DNA of 64,000 nucleotides from Blepharisma stoltei ATCC 30299. Its lineage: Eukaryota; Protista; Ciliophora. The stretch lies in NCBI GenBank assembly GCA_965603825.1, contig CBFDEM010000025.1:248001-312000 (forward strand). The letters are read 5' to 3'. The notes under the pieces are model-generated. The model searched no databases and was not told the DNA's origin. It was given only the letters and a program-made list of their open reading frames with translations. Of the stretch, positions 20,071 to 30,813 are shown piece after piece. Position 1 is the stretch's first letter; the number at the start of each line of letters is the position of its first letter. Made by a program: the position numbers and the translations under genes.

Positions 20071-20922
20071 TTATAAAATAGTGCAGCACTCATAATGGTT
20101 TGTTGGCTTTAGAACAGTGTCTACCCTATCGATCTGCCTTGCTGATATATTTTTTAGTAAAACTGAATCCCCCGATCCAGCTAGCATTAGTGAAGTTTCC
20201 CTCAAAGTTGGGATGAATTTATTGCACGACATGCTCACTACTCTTTTATTTGAAATTGCTGCACTCACAAAAATTCTGTCATCGCCATTATCAATTAAAG
20301 TCATTTTCATATCCACAAAATCTTGAACAACTGCTTCTTCGGCCATGTCTGTGATTTCAGGAAATTCTTGTTTTTTGAAAAATTTGAACTCATTATTCAT
20401 CCCTACGTTTCCTCCAAAAATCAAAAATACTCTTTGAGAGTCCTGCTCTTTTTTTATTTTGCATACAGCTGCATCTGGGTCTTTAACTCCCACTCCTCGT
20501 GTAATTATGCAAAGAGTGGAATCTCCAATGAGCCTGAATGCCAGCTTAATTTCGCATGCAAGGCTCTTTAGCGCTAATGTTGGTTTTGACTTCAAAATTA
20601 AAGATCTCAGCTGAAGTCCATGGAGAACTGGCTGAAAATTAGCTGGCATCCAGTTGCCGCGGATTTCGGTGTTATTTTCTGTTCCAATGCCGCCTGGATA
20701 GAAATTGGCGAACTCCCAATTGTCGTATTCAGTATTTTCTCTAGTAAAAGTGTCCGCAAAAACTAATTTGTTCAAAAGATGTGATTCTGCTTTGCGTGAT
20801 TCTTCCATGAGGGCTTTTTGCTCCTTGAGTGGCTTTTCTTGACGCTCAACCTGAATTTTCATTATTAGTTCTTGAGGAAAAAGCATTGTTTTGTCTTCTT
20901 CAAATTTGTTGTTCCCTTCCAT
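20071..20922 (-). CDS. Hypothetical beta-rich protein with C-terminal CaaX box (CCTIL)
   Basis: Long ORF; first ATG at 20922; prenylation motif with adjacent Cys. Confidence 0.8.
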   Translation of the reverse strand: MEGNNKFEEDKTMLFPQELIMKIQVERQEKPLKEQKALMEESRKAESHLLNKLVFADTFTRENTEYDNWEFANFYPGGIGTENNTEIRGNWMPANFQPVLHGLQLRSLILKSKPTLALKSLACEIKLAFRLIGDSTLCIITRGVGVKDPDAAVCKIKKEQDSQRVFLIFGGNVGMNNEFKFFKKQEFPEITDMAEEAVVQDFVDMKMTLIDNGDDRIFVSAAISNKRVVSMSCNKFIPTLRETSLMLAGSGDSVLLKNISARQIDRVDTVLKPTNHYECCTIL

Positions 20923-21424
20923 CTTTTGATGATTGAAAGTTAAGAAAATTGGTTCCAAAACGAACAAAACATGTAAAAATTAAATAATTTATGCTTCTTC
21001 AAGACTAATAGGATATGGTACTAATTAGTTTTAAATTAAAAAGTTTACTATAATTGAGAGGTCCTAAAGATAAAGATATACTATGATTTAACAGATTTTC
21101 GTAGATATATTTTAAAACGTTAATAATTTAATTGCTTCTAGTAATTTACAGTAATAATATCATTTTGTTGCTTGAGCAATAAAATCTAAAAATATAAGTC
21201 TTTTGAGTCTAAATTTTATATAAAATAAATAATTTAATTGAGAATATTTAAACTCCAAATATTGAGCTTTTTATAAAATAAAATATTTATGCATCTTTAC
21301 GCTGTAATTTACTGATCTAAATATTAATTGTAGCAGCTTATGCCCATTTAAATATAATAAAATTAGAAAACAATCAGAAATTCACTTTGAATTAAAAAGT
21401 TAAAAGCAATATCAACTTAAGATT

Positions 21425-23029
21425 TTAATTTGACGTAAATATAGCTGACAATTGATTTTGGAATAGAGATAAAATCCCACTTAATACAATTGCTAGAAAT
21501 TTTCAAATTAATGACATATCAGCTTTCAAGCCCATTATCATTACAGGTCTCAATATTTAGTCTTGCCTCACTTTTTCTTTAACCAATTTAAGAGCTTTAA
21601 AAGCTGATTTTTCGTATATTTTATCACAATTCTTTAAATGGAAATTATCATTAATGATTGTCAGAATGCTGTCTTCATGTATAGAAAATGATCGATTTAT
21701 TTGAGCTCCAATAAAAATTATATAAAGAATCATAAAAAGAGATGCAAATGCAAGATATATAGCACCAATCATAATTGATATGCTTATAATATGAAAACTT
21801 AAAAATGCTTGGAGAATTAAGATTGCAAGCATAAAAAAGCAGAGAGGAATTGCTAAAGAAGCATAAACAAGGATTCTATAAGTAAATTTTCGACCGAAGT
21901 CTAAAAATGAAGACCTCATAATGTACCATGAATCTACAGTTCTCTTGTCTAGAAAGTCAAGCTTAGGTATATGATATTTTTGGAGAAGGGAATTTTGGTA
22001 GTTTTTAGTAGAAATTAAAGCACTGCATTGATTCATTAATGATTTTTTTCTCTGCAGGTCAATTATTCCAATATAGACATATAGCAGAAAAAGATGAGAC
22101 AGTATAAAACAAGCTATGATTGAGTATGCTGAATAAAAAATTTGGATTGGTCCAAAATTTATATGTCTATTTTGATATAAAATCGAAATCAATGGAGATA
22201 AGGAAAATTGTATTGAAATTAATGTCACAATTAATATTTTAGGTTTTATATTTTCTGCTACATCTTGTATGATAAATTTAGCAAGCTCTATTGTTGGTAT
22301 ACAGATTTTATTTCTACAATAGTGTGGAACGCTTTCATGCTCTTTTTGTGAATTTTTTCTATTATTTGTAAATTTATTTTTTAACTCCTCATGAATCTCA
22401 TTTTCAAAAATCAAGCATAATTTATCAATTAACCTATTTTGCCGGGCAATACTTGCTGCTAATTCCTCCCAAATCACGTCATTGGGGATTTTGAGTCACG
22501 CATTAAGAATTAATTGGATTTTCAGTATCTGTGTATCAACTATTTCAGTATTCATACGATTTCACAGTTCTTCAGTATAAAATCCATATTTTACTGAAAC
22601 CATAAATGTTTTCACACACATGATGGTAACTGTTGCAAAGGTCAAACTTAAAAAGTTTTGAAATTCATCTTTGTAATATATATAAAATATCAATGTAAAT
22701 AAAGTCCAAGATCATGGATAAAATTCCATATAGTAAAATCTATGCCAATAAAACCCCATATTCCTGCTTAAATTCCTCCCAAAAATCATCCATAAAATCG
22801 GTAAAGAAATAGGCCCGAATACTAAATGAATAAAATGAATTAGAGTAGCTATAACAGCATAACTGTACTTATAAGTAATCTCCAAATTTATATCAAAATC
22901 TTCGTGCATCGTCGTTTTAGTGTCAATTTTTTCAATTTGCATTGAAAACTCGTCAGTTGTTCTTATGGTCTCAGCTGACAAATCCAGCTTCACAACTTCT
23001 ATAGAAGGCTGCCTATTAAAACTTTTCAT
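21425..23029 (-). CDS. PHTF/7TMIC-like multi-pass membrane protein, paralog 1; in-frame TAA at 21557-21559 (possible pseudogene or truncated allele)
   Basis: Collinear with paralogs 2 and 3 over the whole length with TGA=Trp; homology continues past the TAA (ILRPVMIMGLKAD..SGILSLFQ). Confidence 0.8.
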
Positions 23030-23071
23030 GTTATTTATAATAATCCGAATTAAGAATATCTAAGAATTAGT

Positions 23072-24535
23072 TTAGTTTTGGTTAATCCCAAGCCAATATT
23101 CTATAGCCGACTGTTCAGTCACTCTTCCTGCTGATACTTCTGGAGGATCAAGAGGATTTGGGTATCTCAAATCTAAATGATGAGCTGCTCCTTCCATCAC
23201 AAAGGCAATAATATTAGGGTTATTTGATTTAGTCACACTTCCAAACTGCCATGGATCTAGTCCTCCATTGCTGAATACAATATTTGATACATCTCTCAAT
23301 GGGATCATAGGGTTTACGTTGGTTCCATAAAAAATATTGGCGTAGTTTATCTGAGGAGTGACTCCCCAAGTCTGCTGGCAATATTGGTTTTCAGCTTGCT
23401 GGTTCCAAGGCTGGTTTCCGAACATTGAGGTTTGTTTAATTCCGCCAATAGGGATATTTAAAGTGCTGCATGATAAATAATCCCATCCATTAGCACTGCC
23501 TAAATTGCCTGTTTGAGTGCCGAAAATGTCATTGCATGTAGATGTGCCTGTATAGTTGTAGTATATGCCTATAGCTTTGAAGGTAGCTTGCAACACTTCC
23601 CATGTGTCTGATATGTTGACATCAGCGTAAGCTTGGCAAGATACATTGACTGGGTGGCCAGGCATAGGATTCAAAAAGTTTGTGGCATATGGGTAGTCAG
23701 TCATTGCCATGTAAGTGAAGGCACTTTGTATGTAGCCAATTAGTTCATCAACATCGCCTTTGGTGATTAAAGCATCACAGGTTTGGAAGGTCATTGATAA
23801 ATTATAGTAAGTTGTCAAGTCTCCTTGGACTTGATATAGATAATCAAATGCTGTGGCCACATAAGCTGTGCATTCTGAAGCTCCTTTTTCTGTATCTGCT
23901 ATTGAGTAATCTCGAGTAATAATTGCGTTGAAGCCATTTGGGTCTGCAGTTCCATTAAAAGCCATAATAGGAGCAGATGCTGCAATTGCACCTAAAACTA
24001 GGTCTGGATATTTGATTCTCATCCATGCTGAAAGCATTCCTCCATAGCTTCCACCAAATACAATAACTGGGGCGTTATTATATTTAGTCTTTAAATAAGT
24101 TATCAAATAAGCATAATCAGCCAATGCTTGATGCGGTGAAAGATACTTAGTATAGCTTGGACTCTGGAAAGATTTGCCTCCAAATGGTAGAGATTGGCCG
24201 AAATATCTATGCTCTGCATACACAACTAGTGCATTTAGTGACTGAGCCAAGTAATCAATAAAGCCTGTATTGTTCATAAAGCTTTCGACTGGAGCTTCAT
24301 TCCCTGTATAGAAGAAAATTGGTCCTTTGCTGCCTCCATTGAGGTAATAGAGGGTCTTGGTAAAGTACCTCATGTTGAAAGTATTTGGCATCGTGGTGTA
24401 ATGATCAACGTAAGTGGTGAAATTAGCCACTGTATAGCCTTGAGGGGTGTACTGGAGAGGACTATATTCGATGTGAGGAATTATTCTTCCTAAGGTGCCA
24501 ATTAGAAATAGGGATAAAGTGGTGACCCAGAACAT
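23072..24535 (-). CDS. Serine peptidase family S28 (prolylcarboxypeptidase/DPP7-like), secreted or lysosomal
   Basis: Signal peptide; PIFFYTGNE, EHRYFGQS, GGSYGG, NGGLDPW, AHHLDL. Confidence 0.96.
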   Translation of the reverse strand: MFWVTTLSLFLIGTLGRIIPHIEYSPLQYTPQGYTVANFTTYVDHYTTMPNTFNMRYFTKTLYYLNGGSKGPIFFYTGNEAPVESFMNNTGFIDYLAQSLNALVVYAEHRYFGQSLPFGGKSFQSPSYTKYLSPHQALADYAYLITYLKTKYNNAPVIVFGGSYGGMLSAWMRIKYPDLVLGAIAASAPIMAFNGTADPNGFNAIITRDYSIADTEKGASECTAYVATAFDYLYQVQGDLTTYYNLSMTFQTCDALITKGDVDELIGYIQSAFTYMAMTDYPYATNFLNPMPGHPVNVSCQAYADVNISDTWEVLQATFKAIGIYYNYTGTSTCNDIFGTQTGNLGSANGWDYLSCSTLNIPIGGIKQTSMFGNQPWNQQAENQYCQQTWGVTPQINYANIFYGTNVNPMIPLRDVSNIVFSNGGLDPWQFGSVTKSNNPNIIAFVMEGAAHHLDLRYPNPLDPPEVSAGRVTEQSAIEYWLGINQN

Positions 24536-24844
24536 ATTTATTCAACAATGAACTTTGAGGGGAAAATATTTAGATTTAAGTTGTTGGTTATTTTTAGGAA
24601 AAAGTGATGATTATTGAAGAGAAGAAATAGTAAAATTGAAGGTAACTGAGATGTGGGCTGTTTACTTATGAGCACGATGCAAAAATCATATTGAGAATAA
24701 AAATTATGAGCGTATATGGGCAATTGGAGATGCAAAAAGAAAATATACCATAATAGAATGCAAACTTTTCGTTTAACTTTTTTTATGATATTAAGATAAA
24801 GTGCAATGTAAAATGGAAGCTGCTAAACAAAATAGAAAACTTTT

Positions 24845-26491
24845 CTAATTATTTAAACAAAACAAATTATCAGACGTATACACAAATTGCACTAACGACA
24901 GCACCCCGCTTCAAAACAACGCACCCAAATTTAACATAAATCCAGAATTTGCTTTGAATCCCATAATTCTTACAGGTCTAACCCTATCATCTTGTTCAAG
25001 CTTATAATACACCGACATAAGCGCTTGATATAAAATGCTATTCTTTGCATCTGTATTTTCTCTTAAATGCAAAATATCATTGCTCAAAGTGACAATTAAA
25101 TCTTTATGCAAATCAAAAGAATCGTTTACTTGTGACCCAACAATAATGATATAAAGTATTTCACTCAAACTTATAAAGCTCAAAAAAATTATTGAAGCCA
25201 ATGCTGCTTTGCTGATTATTACAGAAAAATTCACAGCTCCAAAAAACTGCAAAATAATTCCAAGAATTATAAAAATGCATAAAGGGAGAACTAAAGAGGA
25301 GTAAACAAAGGTTCGATGTGTGTAAGTTCTCCCAAAGTCCAGGCATGCAGCTCTCATATTATATCAGGAATCAATAGTTCTTAAGTCAGTAAAATCCAAT
25401 GAAGGGAGTCGATATTCTTTAGGAAATGACCTATCAAGTTCTTGGCATGAAATTAACGCTGCACATTGCTTCATTAAAAATTTTCGCCTTTTCATATCAA
25501 CAATTCCTACATAAATATATAGAAGGAATCTATTTGTAAAAATAAATGAAATTATCATTGAAAATACAGCATAGGCAACGCCGAAAATCCCTTCCAATGA
25601 ATTATCAAATTGAATTGAAAATAGACTGAGAACTATAGGGAAAAAAGTATAAAGCCCAGCAAAAACATCAATTATTCGCATCTCAATTTTTGATATTGCT
25701 CTATTATTTGATAATTCTATCAAAATCTCAGTCAAAGCTATTGTGGAAATACAATTAGTTTCTTTTTTATTAAACTTAAGACAATGATCCTCACTCTCCT
25801 CATTTTTATTAATTCTTTCTTTTATTTTCATCGGTAATCCACTTTCAAATTTTAAAAATAATGAATTTGGAAACCTATTCAATCGTTTGTAGCTCTTTAA
25901 ATGTTCTTCAATAATTAAATCAGTAGGAATTGTTAACCATGATGCAATTAATAAGTATTTTGTCAAAGATTTTATATCAATTTTTTCATTTCTCATCATT
26001 TTTCAATTTTTCTCAGTATAGTATCCATATTTTATCGAAACTAATAATAGCCGTAGTGTGATTATGGTTGATGTTGATATAATGAGACTTGATGTAGAGC
26101 TAAACTGTTCTGGGAATAAAATAAAATAAATTACCGTAAGGAGTACTCAAAACCATGAGACAAATTCAAATATGTAAAATGGGTGCCAGTTGAAGCCCAT
26201 ATTTGTACATAAGTTGTTTCCAAAGAAAAATCATAAAACAGGAAGAGACGCAGGACCAAATGCAACGTGGATCAAATGGATTGCTAAAGCAATTATGGCG
26301 TGATGGAATATATAATGGACTTCTACCTTCATTTCTTCATCAGGCTCGTTTTTTGTTGCAAAGGTTTCATAATTGTTTAAATCTTGCCATCGAGTTTCAT
26401 CAAGATAGTTAACATTTTCAATAGGTTTTTCTTCTATTTTGAAGGCTTCAAAAGGTTCTGGCAATACAGAAGAAGATGGGCTTACAAACAT
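24845..26491 (-). CDS. PHTF/7TMIC-like multi-pass membrane protein, paralog 2 (548 aa)
   Basis: Three track ORFs joined via TGA=Trp; ends RPVRIMGFKAN..SGVLSLVQF..TAG. Confidence 0.85.
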
Positions 26492-26600
26492 TTTTTATAT
26501 TTTTTACTCCAATTTCTGAATTTTAGCTACACAAATATATGATAATAAAAATATAATTTTTTTCAAGCATTAAAAGATTATACATAAAATATTATTTTCC

Positions 26601-28217
26601 TTACAAATTGGTACCGCGAGCATATCCAATCTGCCATAATGAAGCCAAGCCACTTACGATGAGTGCTCCTAAATTAGCAATAAATTTCGAATTTGCCTTG
26701 AGACCCATAATTTTGATAGGTCTTAGAATTTCATCATGCTGCAGCTTACTATCAATTGAGCACAAGGATTGATAAATTGCATTATTATTAGACTGACTAT
26801 TTTTGCTGATATGCAAAACATCATTGCTTAGTGTGGTAATCAAATCTCGATGGACATCAAACATATCATTTATTTGTGAACCTATAATAGTCATATATGC
26901 AATTCCAATCAAACTAATAAAAGCCAAATAAATTACTGCAATTGTAGCAGGAATGCTTATTATTGATATAATTTCAAACATTTCAAGAATCAATGAAAAA
27001 ATAATCAAAATGCATATAGGGAGAATTGATGAAGCATATATGACTGTTCGATATGTGTATTGCCTTCCAAAATCCAGAAAAGCTGCTCTCATATTATACC
27101 ATGAATCTATACTTTTTAAATCGTAAAAATCTAAACTTGGATACCAATATTCTTCTGGTAAACTTTTGTCCCTTTCCTTAATGCTAATTAATGAGCTGCA
27201 TCGCTTCATTAAAAATTTCCGTCTTTTCATATCAACAATTCCAACATATACATATAAAAGATATCTCCTTGCAATTACGATACAAATTAGAAAAGAATAA
27301 AGCCAATAAATAACTCCAAGAGCTCCAAAATCCCATCCATAATTAATGACAAAAGAAATTATAGGAGCTAGTGCAAAACTCAGAGCAAAAACATCAAGAA
27401 TTCTCGACTCTAATTTAGACATTGAAAACTTGACTGCTAAATCAATTAAAATTTTACTAAAAATGATTGATGGAACACAGTCTTTTGATTTTCTATGATG
27501 CAAAACTTTTACGCGACTATTCTTTATATTGTACAAATCTTTGGTTTTCTCAATCATCTCCTTTATTTTTTCAGGCAGCTCCGATTTAAAAGCCATGCAA
27601 AGCTGACTAGGGTCTCTATTGAGCCTTTTGAAACTTTTCAATAGCTCTTGACGAGCTATATCAGGAGGAATAATCTGCCATGATGACACTATTAATTGAT
27701 CAACCAACATTTTGGCTGGAATTTTTTCTGATTTCATATAGTTCCAAAATTCTTCTGTGTAGTAGCCATACTTAATTGATATAAGCAGTTCTTTTATAAA
27801 AATGGCTGAAGAAGTCGCCAAAATTATGCTAGAAGAGTTGCTAAATTCTGTGTATGATAAGAAATAATATAATATTGTTAAGGGAATCCAAGTCCAGGGT
27901 ATAAGTTCATATATATAAAACTGGTGCCAGTTGAAACCCATGTTTGTGCACAAGTTTTTTCCACAAACTAGCCATAAAAAGGGGATTGAAATTGGACCCA
28001 AAAAAGTATGTAAAAAATGAATTACCAAAGCTATAAATGCCTGATGGAAAATATATTCAATTTCTGTTTTCATTTCTTCAGTGCACTCGAAATTATCAGT
28101 CTCGCTCTCATTTTTTTCAGCTTGAGTCCAAATATTCTCATCTAAAATATTAGAGTTTTCTTCTGATTTTATAACTTCAAAAGTATCAGGCAAAGGCATT
28201 ACTCTTTCTGATTTCAT
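26601..28217 (-). CDS. PHTF/7TMIC-like multi-pass membrane protein, paralog 3 (538 aa)
   Basis: Uninterrupted ORF; first ATG at 28217; shared NMGFxW, KYGYYTE, GIVDMKRRKFLM, IDSWYNMR, RPIKIMGLKAN motifs. Confidence 0.88.
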   Translation of the reverse strand: MKSERVMPLPDTFEVIKSEENSNILDENIWTQAEKNESETDNFECTEEMKTEIEYIFHQAFIALVIHFLHTFLGPISIPFLWLVCGKNLCTNMGFNWHQFYIYELIPWTWIPLTILYYFLSYTEFSNSSSIILATSSAIFIKELLISIKYGYYTEEFWNYMKSEKIPAKMLVDQLIVSSWQIIPPDIARQELLKSFKRLNRDPSQLCMAFKSELPEKIKEMIEKTKDLYNIKNSRVKVLHHRKSKDCVPSIIFSKILIDLAVKFSMSKLESRILDVFALSFALAPIISFVINYGWDFGALGVIYWLYSFLICIVIARRYLLYVYVGIVDMKRRKFLMKRCSSLISIKERDKSLPEEYWYPSLDFYDLKSIDSWYNMRAAFLDFGRQYTYRTVIYASSILPICILIIFSLILEMFEIISIISIPATIAVIYLAFISLIGIAYMTIIGSQINDMFDVHRDLITTLSNDVLHISKNSQSNNNAIYQSLCSIDSKLQHDEILRPIKIMGLKANSKFIANLGALIVSGLASLWQIGYARGTNL

Positions 28218-28320: not shown

Positions 28321-30813
28321 TTAATTATTTGGCTGCTGATTAGCGGCAGCTCCAAGCATTCCTTGAGCAGTGTTGAAAAGATTAATTGGATTTTCAGTAT
28401 CACACAGCATGTATCCAGTAAGTCCCAATCCTCCCAATAACTCTGCCTGCATCTTTGGTCCAGCTTCAGAAATGGCGACCAGTGTATCACTTCCAATGCT
28501 TCTAATGATACCTTTGAATTTTTCGCTCTCAATCTCTGCTAGTCTTCTTGCTTTAGTGATTTCAAGGTCATCGATTTTCCTTTGATATTCAATTTCAAGA
28601 CTTTGCTTTTCTTTGGTATGGTTGATTTCGTTTTCTCTCTTTAATTTTTCTGCGCGTGAGTTCAGCTCAGCTGCATCTTTTTTGCTTTGAGCTTCAATTC
28701 TATTCTTTTCAGTCATAGCCTTGGCTGTTGCAGTAGCAATACCTTCGCTTTCCACATTTTCAGTTTGGCTTTTCAGTAAATATAGTTTATTGTTCTCGGC
28801 TTCTACCTTCAACTGGCCTTCAATTCTCAGCTTCTCCAGCTGTCCTTCAGCTTCTTGAGCTTGCCTTTCTGATGCATGTCTAGCCTTAGCTTCTTCAGTT
28901 TGAGTTGTAATTTCAATAGCCATGGTAACAGACTCTTGTAGTCTTTCCTTAGTTTGACGATCGACAGGCTCTACAGACTGAATATCCACATTAGTCAAGA
29001 CCAAATTATTTTCATCGAATTTGAAATCGTCATTAACATGTCCTGACTCATCAAGTCCAAATACAGATTTTCTGATAATTCTTGCAGATTCTCTATGGAA
29101 TTGGTCAAAAGATGCCCCAGCAACTGCTCCTCTTACTCTGGAAGCCATGAAATTGCAGAGGTTTCCGACGAAGTCACGGACCTTGAAGACTTGCTTGTGA
29201 GTTTCCTCATCACTTTTGTCGATGTTGAATTTCCAGTTATAAGAAAGCTGCAGGCGGAGACGACAATGATCTGATGTATCGACTTCTATGATGTCAGTAC
29301 TGAAATCAGGGCCGAGCATTAAATGCAGAGTTTTAATTACGCCGACACGTTTTGGCTTACCACCTGACAAGATGTTGACTGTAAACTGTTCATCTGGAGA
29401 AAGCATGACAAGGTTTGGTCCTAGCACTGTGCGAGATACCTTTGACTTGTAATCGTAGACTTGGACAATAGAGTTTGCAGGGCATTTATAAGTGACAACT
29501 CTAGTTTTATTCGTTCTAGCTTGGCCTTGTTGGCTTAGAAGTTCTTCAACGACGTCACTGAGTTCCATCTCCCATAGTTCTTCATGAGGCTTAAGCATGT
29601 AGCTCTTACCAATTTCTGATCTCACCTGTCCGGATTTGATGTCTCTGACATAAATTCCTTCATTAATATGCAAAGGTATTGCTTTTCTTACTTCCAAAAT
29701 TTCTACCTGAGTAGGTGGCATATATGAGCAAGGCCCATAAATCATCCATCTGTCTCCAGGTTTTCTGTCTTCTCCTTCACTGTGAAGTCCTTCTTTCGCT
29801 CTCAACAGTAAAGCTTCATCGTCAGCTAAGATGTATTTATTTTTAATTCCGCCTTCTAAACTTTCACCAGGAATTAAGAAAAAGCTTCTTTCACCCCAGC
29901 GTTGTTCTTTGAAACCATAGCGATTTGTCCCAAGTTCTTTATCAAAAGGATCTAAGACAACGCAGTATTGATTTTTATCCAGAACTGTAATTTTCACATC
30001 TCCAATGAATTCTTCATAAACGTCAATTATATGAAGTGGGCTCATTTCTGAAGTCACAAGCCATTCTTCTCCTGCTTTTCTTTTAATTCCATAAACATCA
30101 ATAAATGCTCTAGTGGCTCTAACAGCTATAGCTTTATAGTCAGTAAGAATTTTGGCTTCAAGAGTTTCGATGACAGTTTCATAAACTCCTGGTAGGTAAG
30201 CACCAGGTGTTCTGATAAGCCAATCTTCACCTGCTTTTCTGATATTTCCTTCGATATCAGTCAATTCTCTTTGAGCTCTGAGCTTTAAGGCTTGATTTAC
30301 TTTGATTTTTTTGGCTTCAACTTCTCTTACTACTCTTTCTTCGATTCTTGGATAATAAGTCCCTGGACCTTTGAAGTACCACAAATCACCTGGCTGCCTT
30401 TTATTTTCTTCTTCATCTGTGAAAGCTCTTTCAGATTCTATTAAAAGAGCTGTATCAGGAGCTACAACACGAAGCGCAGTGACCCTTCCAATGATTTCTT
30501 CACGAGGGTATAGAGGGAATGGATCTGGATAATCCTCATGGAATCTGATTTCTTGATCTCCATGGCGAACATTCACTTGTCCGTACTTATCAATGCTCAG
30601 TGATTTATCTGGATTTCTGATGACAGGGTTGTTTATTACTGCAAAAGATCTCGGAGGAATTGAAGTCATTGGAACTGGGTCTTTGCCAGTGACTACCTTT
30701 TCGTGGTCTTGTTTGATAAAAATCTTAGGACCAACATCAAGACGCGTGACGTTAGAGTTAGTGTCAAGGACATGGATGAAATGGTGAGGAGGAATTCGGA
30801 TAATGTTTGCCAT
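28321..30813 (-). CDS. MVP: Major vault protein
   Basis: IRIPPHHFIHVLDTNSNVTR start, vault repeats (GDLW, GEDWL, GEEWL, GDRWMIYGP), LGPDFSTD shoulder, coiled-coil cap, NPINLFNTAQGMLG. Confidence 0.97.
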   Translation of the reverse strand: MANIIRIPPHHFIHVLDTNSNVTRLDVGPKIFIKQDHEKVVTGKDPVPMTSIPPRSFAVINNPVIRNPDKSLSIDKYGQVNVRHGDQEIRFHEDYPDPFPLYPREEIIGRVTALRVVAPDTALLIESERAFTDEEENKRQPGDLWYFKGPGTYYPRIEERVVREVEAKKIKVNQALKLRAQRELTDIEGNIRKAGEDWLIRTPGAYLPGVYETVIETLEAKILTDYKAIAVRATRAFIDVYGIKRKAGEEWLVTSEMSPLHIIDVYEEFIGDVKITVLDKNQYCVVLDPFDKELGTNRYGFKEQRWGERSFFLIPGESLEGGIKNKYILADDEALLLRAKEGLHSEGEDRKPGDRWMIYGPCSYMPPTQVEILEVRKAIPLHINEGIYVRDIKSGQVRSEIGKSYMLKPHEELWEMELSDVVEELLSQQGQARTNKTRVVTYKCPANSIVQVYDYKSKVSRTVLGPNLVMLSPDEQFTVNILSGGKPKRVGVIKTLHLMLGPDFSTDIIEVDTSDHCRLRLQLSYNWKFNIDKSDEETHKQVFKVRDFVGNLCNFMASRVRGAVAGASFDQFHRESARIIRKSVFGLDESGHVNDDFKFDENNLVLTNVDIQSVEPVDRQTKERLQESVTMAIEITTQTEEAKARHASERQAQEAEGQLEKLRIEGQLKVEAENNKLYLLKSQTENVESEGIATATAKAMTEKNRIEAQSKKDAAELNSRAEKLKRENEINHTKEKQSLEIEYQRKIDDLEITKARRLAEIESEKFKGIIRSIGSDTLVAISEAGPKMQAELLGGLGLTGYMLCDTENPINLFNTAQGMLGAAANQQPNN

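Follow-up and report, generated by a model that had tools for sequence, protein, structure and literature searches.

What are the three related membrane proteins that the ciliate Blepharisma stoltei encodes close together on one strand of its genome, and what might they do for the cell? The stretch of DNA that carries them, here called the window, comprises 64,000 nucleotides (G000:C25:248001-312000) of a 41.46-Mb, 64-contig genome; the genes occupy positions 21425-28217 of it, and they, their parts and the neighbouring genes described below all lie on the minus strand. Read under translation table 4, in which TGA specifies Trp, each is one intron-less, single-exon open reading frame (ORF): gene A (26601-28217; P0001) is intact, with 538 amino acids, no TGA codon and a TAA stop; gene B (24845-26491; P0002) has 548 amino acids, five TGA codons being read as Trp; and gene C (21425-23029; P0021) runs to 534 codons, with four TGA codons read as Trp and one in-frame TAA. 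A preliminary description, made from the sequence alone, had reported three paralogs in the same orientation at these positions, two of them interrupted unless TGA is read as Trp, and translation under table 4 bears this out. Genes A and B share 49% amino acid identity, and gene C shares 38% with each of them.

The same description took the three for candidate chemoreceptor channels of the seven-transmembrane ion channel (7TMIC) superfamily, which takes in the insects' odorant receptors (ORs) as well as their gustatory receptors (GRs), the DUF3537 proteins of plants and the PHTF proteins of animals. On the evidence below, the genes are probably members of an 11-copy family of Class-B (PHTF-like) 7TMICs, whose products may be subunits of tetrameric cation channels; a role as chemoreceptors, proposed by analogy with the insect proteins, is unlikely.

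Predicted fold and anatomy of the gene A product

An AlphaFold2 (AF2) model of the gene A product, made with a 75-sequence alignment, reaches a predicted local distance difference test score (pLDDT) of 88.0 and a predicted TM-score (pTM) of 0.87; an earlier AF2 model from an 8-sequence alignment (pLDDT 39.7) was discarded. All of the top 20 Foldseek matches to the model are 7TMICs, with probabilities of 0.90-1.0 and E-values from 1e-3 to 0.1; transporters come after them, at probabilities below 0.15. In structural alignments the solved 7TMICs outrank all other folds by 3-7 Z units, with 80-94% of each target covered, a Z of about 12-13 to Orco, root-mean-square deviations (rmsd) of 5.3-7.0 Å and identities of 4-11%. 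In the ESM Atlas, the Atlas's own model matches an arthropod PF12129 (PHTF) cluster (TM 0.67 by query, 0.45 by row, 437 residues), and the AF2 model matches plant DUF3537 (TM 0.53 by query, 0.64 by target, 341 residues), to which the language-model feature score is 0.91. Another Atlas candidate, Tmp39 (feature score 0.93), was dropped, as structural matches gave it no support. Judged from these models, a homologous 7TMIC fold in this family is very probable: the proposal that the proteins belong with ORs, GRs and PHTF has held, and the model superimposes on that fold ahead of any transporter.

By alignment, S1 of the gene A model spans residues 101-127 and S2 residues 129-151; the secondary structure assigned by DSSP places S3 at 268-293, S4 at 299-342, S5 at 367-413, S6 at 422-471, S7a at 477-498 and S7b at 510-537. 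Helices S4-S6 are 44-50 residues long and so have the long cytoplasmic (anchor-domain) extensions of the 7TMIC superfamily. Between S2 and S3 lies a confidently folded intracellular loop 1 (IL1) of 116 residues (residues 152-267; 27417-27764), with an invariant W180. IL1 is a compact helical domain with small strands, and the fold searches barely probe it.

The seventh transmembrane helix (TM7) is split, with S7a and S7b joined by a two-strand hairpin at 502-507 (strands 502-503 and 506-507; pLDDT 85-97), and GRs have the same order of S7a, beta-hairpin and S7b (PMC12635824). The hairpin segment (residues 498-509, LRPIKIMGLKAN; 26691-26726) includes P500 and G505, which hardly vary across the wider family, and leads into S7b (26607-26690), the predicted pore helix, which contains 522-SGLASLWQI-530.

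Ahead of S1 the model has an extra hydrophobic helix, H0 (residues 57-85; 27963-28049; pLDDT >90), with conserved H67 and G74-P75; from the model, it may cross the membrane as an eighth span or be re-entrant, comparable to S0 of Orco. Lys and Arg together number 21, 12 and 6 in IL1-3, the loops placed inside the cell, and 0 in EL1-3, those placed outside, counts that suit the orientation of S1-S7 in 7TMICs, which have the N-terminus inside and the C-terminus outside; the side on which the N-terminus lies depends on H0.

Conservation among the paralogs is highest (58-64%) in the cytoplasmic extensions of S4 and S5 and in the hairpin, and lowest (25-29%) in S1, S3 and the stretch of S4 within the membrane. 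The S4 and S5 extensions, the anchor-domain equivalent (residues 323-388; 27054-27251), hold D329, R332, P360, W373, R377 and G384, all of them invariant or nearly so in the family, as are Y150, W180, R390 and G505; N450, H456 and P500 are conserved in 62-64 of the 75 aligned sequences.

Resemblance to PHTF and to insect receptors

A long IL1 between TM2 and TM3 is the feature that defines PHTF-like Class-B 7TMICs (10.1101/2023.08.30.555482), and the Blepharisma family combines such a loop with a seven-helix, OR-like core and a split TM7. The preliminary description had further pointed to a series of PHTF motifs in the C-terminal halves of the proteins. The strings it quoted from the three genes (YVYVGIVDMKRRKFLM, PSLDFYDLKSIDSWYNMRAAFL, MTIIGSQIN, RPIKIMGLKAN and the endings SLWQI, SLVQF and SLFQN) are all found in the paralogs, and those it set beside them from PHTF occur in vertebrate PHTF1/2 (sequences from the PMC9998090 supplement). 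When the two sets were compared manually, two blocks agreed in exact spacing: P360-x12-W373-x3-R377-x6-G384, and P500-x4-G505-L-x2-N509, set against PFRLYGLTMN, the P-x12-W-x3-R-x6-G and P-x4-G-L-x2-N of the C-terminal half of PHTF2. A third agrees loosely (KRR...LIS against KQR...LTS, or KxR...L[IT]S), and the VTLGSET block disagrees with the family, as does R390.

The family also departs from PHTF in several respects. Its IL1 is confidently folded at 116 residues, whereas that of PHTF exceeds 300 and is mostly unstructured; the PHTF-type N-terminal region of about 100 residues is absent, an acidic tail and the extra hydrophobic helix being found instead; and there are 11 copies in the genome rather than one or two. 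From plant DUF3537, a Class-A 7TMIC whose predicted structure superimposes on the model as given above, it differs in having the long IL1, which DUF3537 lacks.

How far does the likeness to insect receptors (BmGr9, Gr43a, Gr64a, MhOr5 and AbOrco) extend? Both groups share the order S7a, beta-hairpin, S7b, the long cytoplasmic extensions of S4-S6 and the occurrence of paralogs in tandem arrays. The gate residues of BmGr9 lie in 436-TYLVILIQF-444 (residue roles from PMC11100771). With the register taken from the ends of alignment ranges rather than from a residue-level alignment, a constant offset of 86 across five BmGr9 alignments puts S522, Q529 and I530 opposite T436, Q443 and F444, and Q529 likewise falls opposite Q472 of AbOrco and Q467 of MhOr5 (eugenol structure). 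The S7b motif of the family, [S/T]G-h5-Q-h, has Ser or Thr in 11/11 paralogs and Gln in 10/11; in the wider family Ser or Thr is present in 56/75 sequences and Gln in 23/75. Compared with the TYhhhhhQF of GRs, with which it is in register by range ends, the motif has Gly in place of Tyr (no paralog has Tyr), and Phe is retained in gene B only. The preliminary description likened the end of the last helix to the TM7 signature hhhhhQF of insect GRs; its Gln is placed by the range ends in register with the GR gate. The Blepharisma proteins further differ from insect receptors in the low identity of the structural alignments, the long IL1, the extra N-terminal helix and their few, old copies.

If the solved insect receptors are taken as a guide, the subunits would tetramerise by way of the cytoplasmic extensions of S4-S7a, which are conserved, and S7b would line a central cation pore in which the conserved Ser/Thr522 and Gln529 would stand where GRs have the Thr ring and the gating Gln. 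A site controlling the gate may lie in the outer halves of S1, S3 and S4, where conservation is lower. Whether the family acts as an ion channel at all is, by the same analogy, an even call.

Relatives outside Blepharisma are numerous. A word-indexed search returned only genes A and B and sixteen near-identical proteins of 572 amino acids (22% identity, E ~1e-5), encoded on marine metagenomic contigs (L012:4595-6313, L013:2699-4417, L014:2364-4082) in a bacterial gene order that includes ABC transporter, sulfatase, MerC and CobW genes. These are the closest non-ciliate relatives and form a well-supported clade of their own. Transfer of PHTF-like (Class-B) 7TMICs from eukaryotes to prokaryotes, and bacterial Class-B-like proteins, have been reported (10.1101/2023.08.30.555482), and the bacterial context of the 572-amino-acid relatives is consistent with that report and is a further point of likeness to Class B. 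A search with the 75-sequence profile, limited to the 8000 most word-rich candidates, returned five Blepharisma proteins; an exhaustive profile search matched 896 representative clusters at E<=1e-3 and 377 at E<=1e-10, two proteins of Euplotes crassus among them. The nearest neighbours in the ESM Atlas are ciliate clusters named "Transmembrane protein, putative". Three of the paralogs, one each on contigs C14, C36 and C57, bear the UniRef name "Odorant receptor" (A0AAU9IQX2, A0AAU9JB07, A0AAU9K902); none of the three matches any Pfam family at E up to 10, and the label is suspected to come from an automatic name predictor.

Age of the family and its possible roles

Several results weigh against membership in the 7TMIC superfamily, and against Class B in particular. 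Sequence profiles tie the family to none of the named 7TMIC families (PHTF1-2_N, DUF3537, 7tm_6, 7tm_7): seven paralogs scanned against Pfam at E up to 10 matched none of the four, and 75 aligned relatives gave no relevant Pfam family at E up to 0.01. Six-frame searches of the genome with PF12129 (PHTF1-2_N) found no match, with controls equally silent; PF12056 (DUF3537) was unmatched both in the paralogs and throughout the genome; and 7tm_7 (PF08395) and 7tm_6 (PF02949) gave only sub-threshold matches in the genome, none at loci of the family. A family profile run against PDB sequences returned only noise, at E 0.27 or worse. Foldseek gives low TM-scores (0.27-0.32 by query), and the PHTF cluster found with the Atlas's own model is absent from the matches listed for the AF2 model, the Atlas search being approximate. 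D329, R332, N450 and H456 of the family are not found in vertebrate PHTF, nor, among its invariant residues, are Y150 and W180; the hydrophobic helix at 57-85 is an eighth, outside the canonical seven; and S7b, the predicted pore helix, is just 34% conserved among the paralogs. Tetramer, pore and conductance, finally, are carried over wholly by analogy. The sub-threshold genome matches, one to 7tm_7 at G000:C5:530259-530402 (E 0.03, 17.5 bits) and one to 7tm_6 at G000:C25:357363-357671 (E 0.16, 15 bits), are at loci unconnected with the family and are probably noise.

A six-frame search of the genome found 11 paralogs at six loci: three in the window, three on contig C36, two on C31 and single copies on C14, C57 and C27, each of which is, under table 4, a single open frame 534-549 codons long. 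The family is multi-copy and partly tandem, with arrays of three, three and two, and to that extent the preliminary description is borne out. Identity among the paralogs ranges from 26 to 63%, synonymous sites are saturated (pS 0.66-0.78), the ratio of nonsynonymous to synonymous substitution (dN/dS) is 0.17-0.31 for the pairs in which it could be computed, and there are no young duplicates among the 11. In a maximum-likelihood tree of the paralogs and 32 outside relatives, ten of the 11 fall into one clade (support 98/97), which includes a subclade (100/100) made up of gene C, the copy on C14, A and B; the copy on C27 clusters with non-Blepharisma sequences. The expansion is lineage-specific yet old, and it is under purifying selection: saturated synonymous sites together with these dN/dS values indicate duplicates that arose long ago and have been held under constraint, not an array in rapid diversification. 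The picture of a family expanding and diversifying like the receptor arrays of insects, also part of the preliminary description, is not supported by these data.

What, then, might such a family do? One possibility, doubtful but worth considering, is that these are housekeeping proteins of an internal membrane (the endoplasmic reticulum (ER) or another organelle), acting there as a channel or scaffold with no sensory task, a role of the kind suggested for animal PHTF1. No function is known for PHTF proteins, and an ER location has been reported for PHTF1 (PMC9998090); the Class-B features of the family (long IL1, PHTF motif spacing), purifying selection on all copies and the wide distribution of relatives, including those in Euplotes, would agree with such a role. 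It is harder to reconcile with 11 diverged copies, ten of them in a lineage-specific clade, a number rarely kept for genes of this kind, or with the points at which the resemblance to PHTF breaks down: the short, folded IL1 and the missing PHTF N-terminal Pfam domain.

A chemosensory array, in which surface ligand-gated channels for food cues or mating pheromones (gamones) diversify by tandem duplication, is less easily defended and seems unlikely. Its attraction is evident in the 7TMIC fold and the GR-like motif in S7b, in the ten-copy lineage-specific clade with its partial arrays, and in the contrast between the variable outer helices S1, S3 and S4 and the conserved cytoplasmic core, which insect receptors show as well; variability of lipid-facing helices is, however, generic in membrane proteins. 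Only 11 copies exist, moreover, all of them old and constrained; PHTF-like proteins have no known chemosensory role, and a review of GRs leaves it as not known whether such proteins act as chemoreceptors (PMC12635824). That the likeness to ORs and GRs is convergent packing of long helices in a polytopic protein of other descent, such as a transporter, is very improbable: the missing sequence-level link to named 7TMIC families, the high rmsd and the additional N-terminal helix would suit it, but all solved 7TMICs rank first by the Z gap and coverage given above, transporters score poorly in Foldseek, the model reproduces a split TM7 with its hairpin, three receptor types have the gating Gln in register, and the motif spacing is exactly that of PHTF.

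The locus and the family as a test system

Within the window, gene C differs from the other members of the PHTF-like family in its in-frame TAA (21557-21559), at a site that codes for Glu or Asp in 10/10 other paralogs (eight times as GAA); it alone among the 11 has an internal TAA or TAG. The public model of the gene ends there, at 490 amino acids, and the 43 codons beyond retain the conserved LRPxxIMG hairpin (LRPVMIMGLKAD) and the last helix. The TAA may be a nonsense mutation of recent origin, a mistake in the assembly or a codon that is read through. The gene is probably broken, a recent pseudogene, barring assembly error or read-through at the TAA; a product truncated there, lacking the last helix, would be unable to form a pore.

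The three genes are neighbours on one strand, and to this extent the term tandem cluster is justified; genes B and C are, however, separated by a gene for an S28 serine carboxypeptidase (23072-24535; PF05577, E 1.3e-73), which is not a member of the family. Upstream of gene A lies an intact gene for a major vault protein (28321-30813; 830 amino acids, with Vault repeats and shoulder domain in Pfam), and directly downstream of gene C a 298-amino-acid ORF (20071-20967) with no Pfam match. All 12 Trp codons of gene A are TGG, and its neighbours are likewise free of TGA (seven TGG in the major vault protein gene, eight in the S28 gene), while the paralogs of gene A have one to six TGA codons each; over its long open frames the window totals 150 TGG and 100 TGA. 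TGA as a Trp codon seems to be avoided in certain genes, perhaps highly expressed ones.

Class-B 7TMICs have been described across unicellular eukaryotes (Himmel, Moi and Benton 2023; 10.1101/2023.08.30.555482). Ciliates go unmentioned in the main text of three key 7TMIC papers, no ciliate genus names occur in the supplements of PMC9998090 that were covered, and no publication treating 7TMICs in ciliates was found in the literature searched. With the class reported in 2023 and "Odorant receptor" labels already in UniRef, this is not a new kind of protein: the advance is a documented family and a system in which it can be tested.

Blepharisma offers a giant cell suited to recording, RNA interference and a well-described pheromone behaviour. 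PHTF-like 7TMICs have been kept from humans to protists, and to our knowledge none has a known function; 11 compact, intron-less genes in such a cell make a practical test system for Class B. Are Class-B 7TMICs channels, and if so, what gates them? It is rather improbable that the ciliate-specific expansion of PHTF-like 7TMICs supplies cell-surface, ligand-gated cation channels that sense environmental or mating cues. If it did, this would be the first function assigned to any Class-B member, would offer a hint at the role of human PHTF1/2, and would place Class-B function in a cell whose size allows direct electrophysiology.

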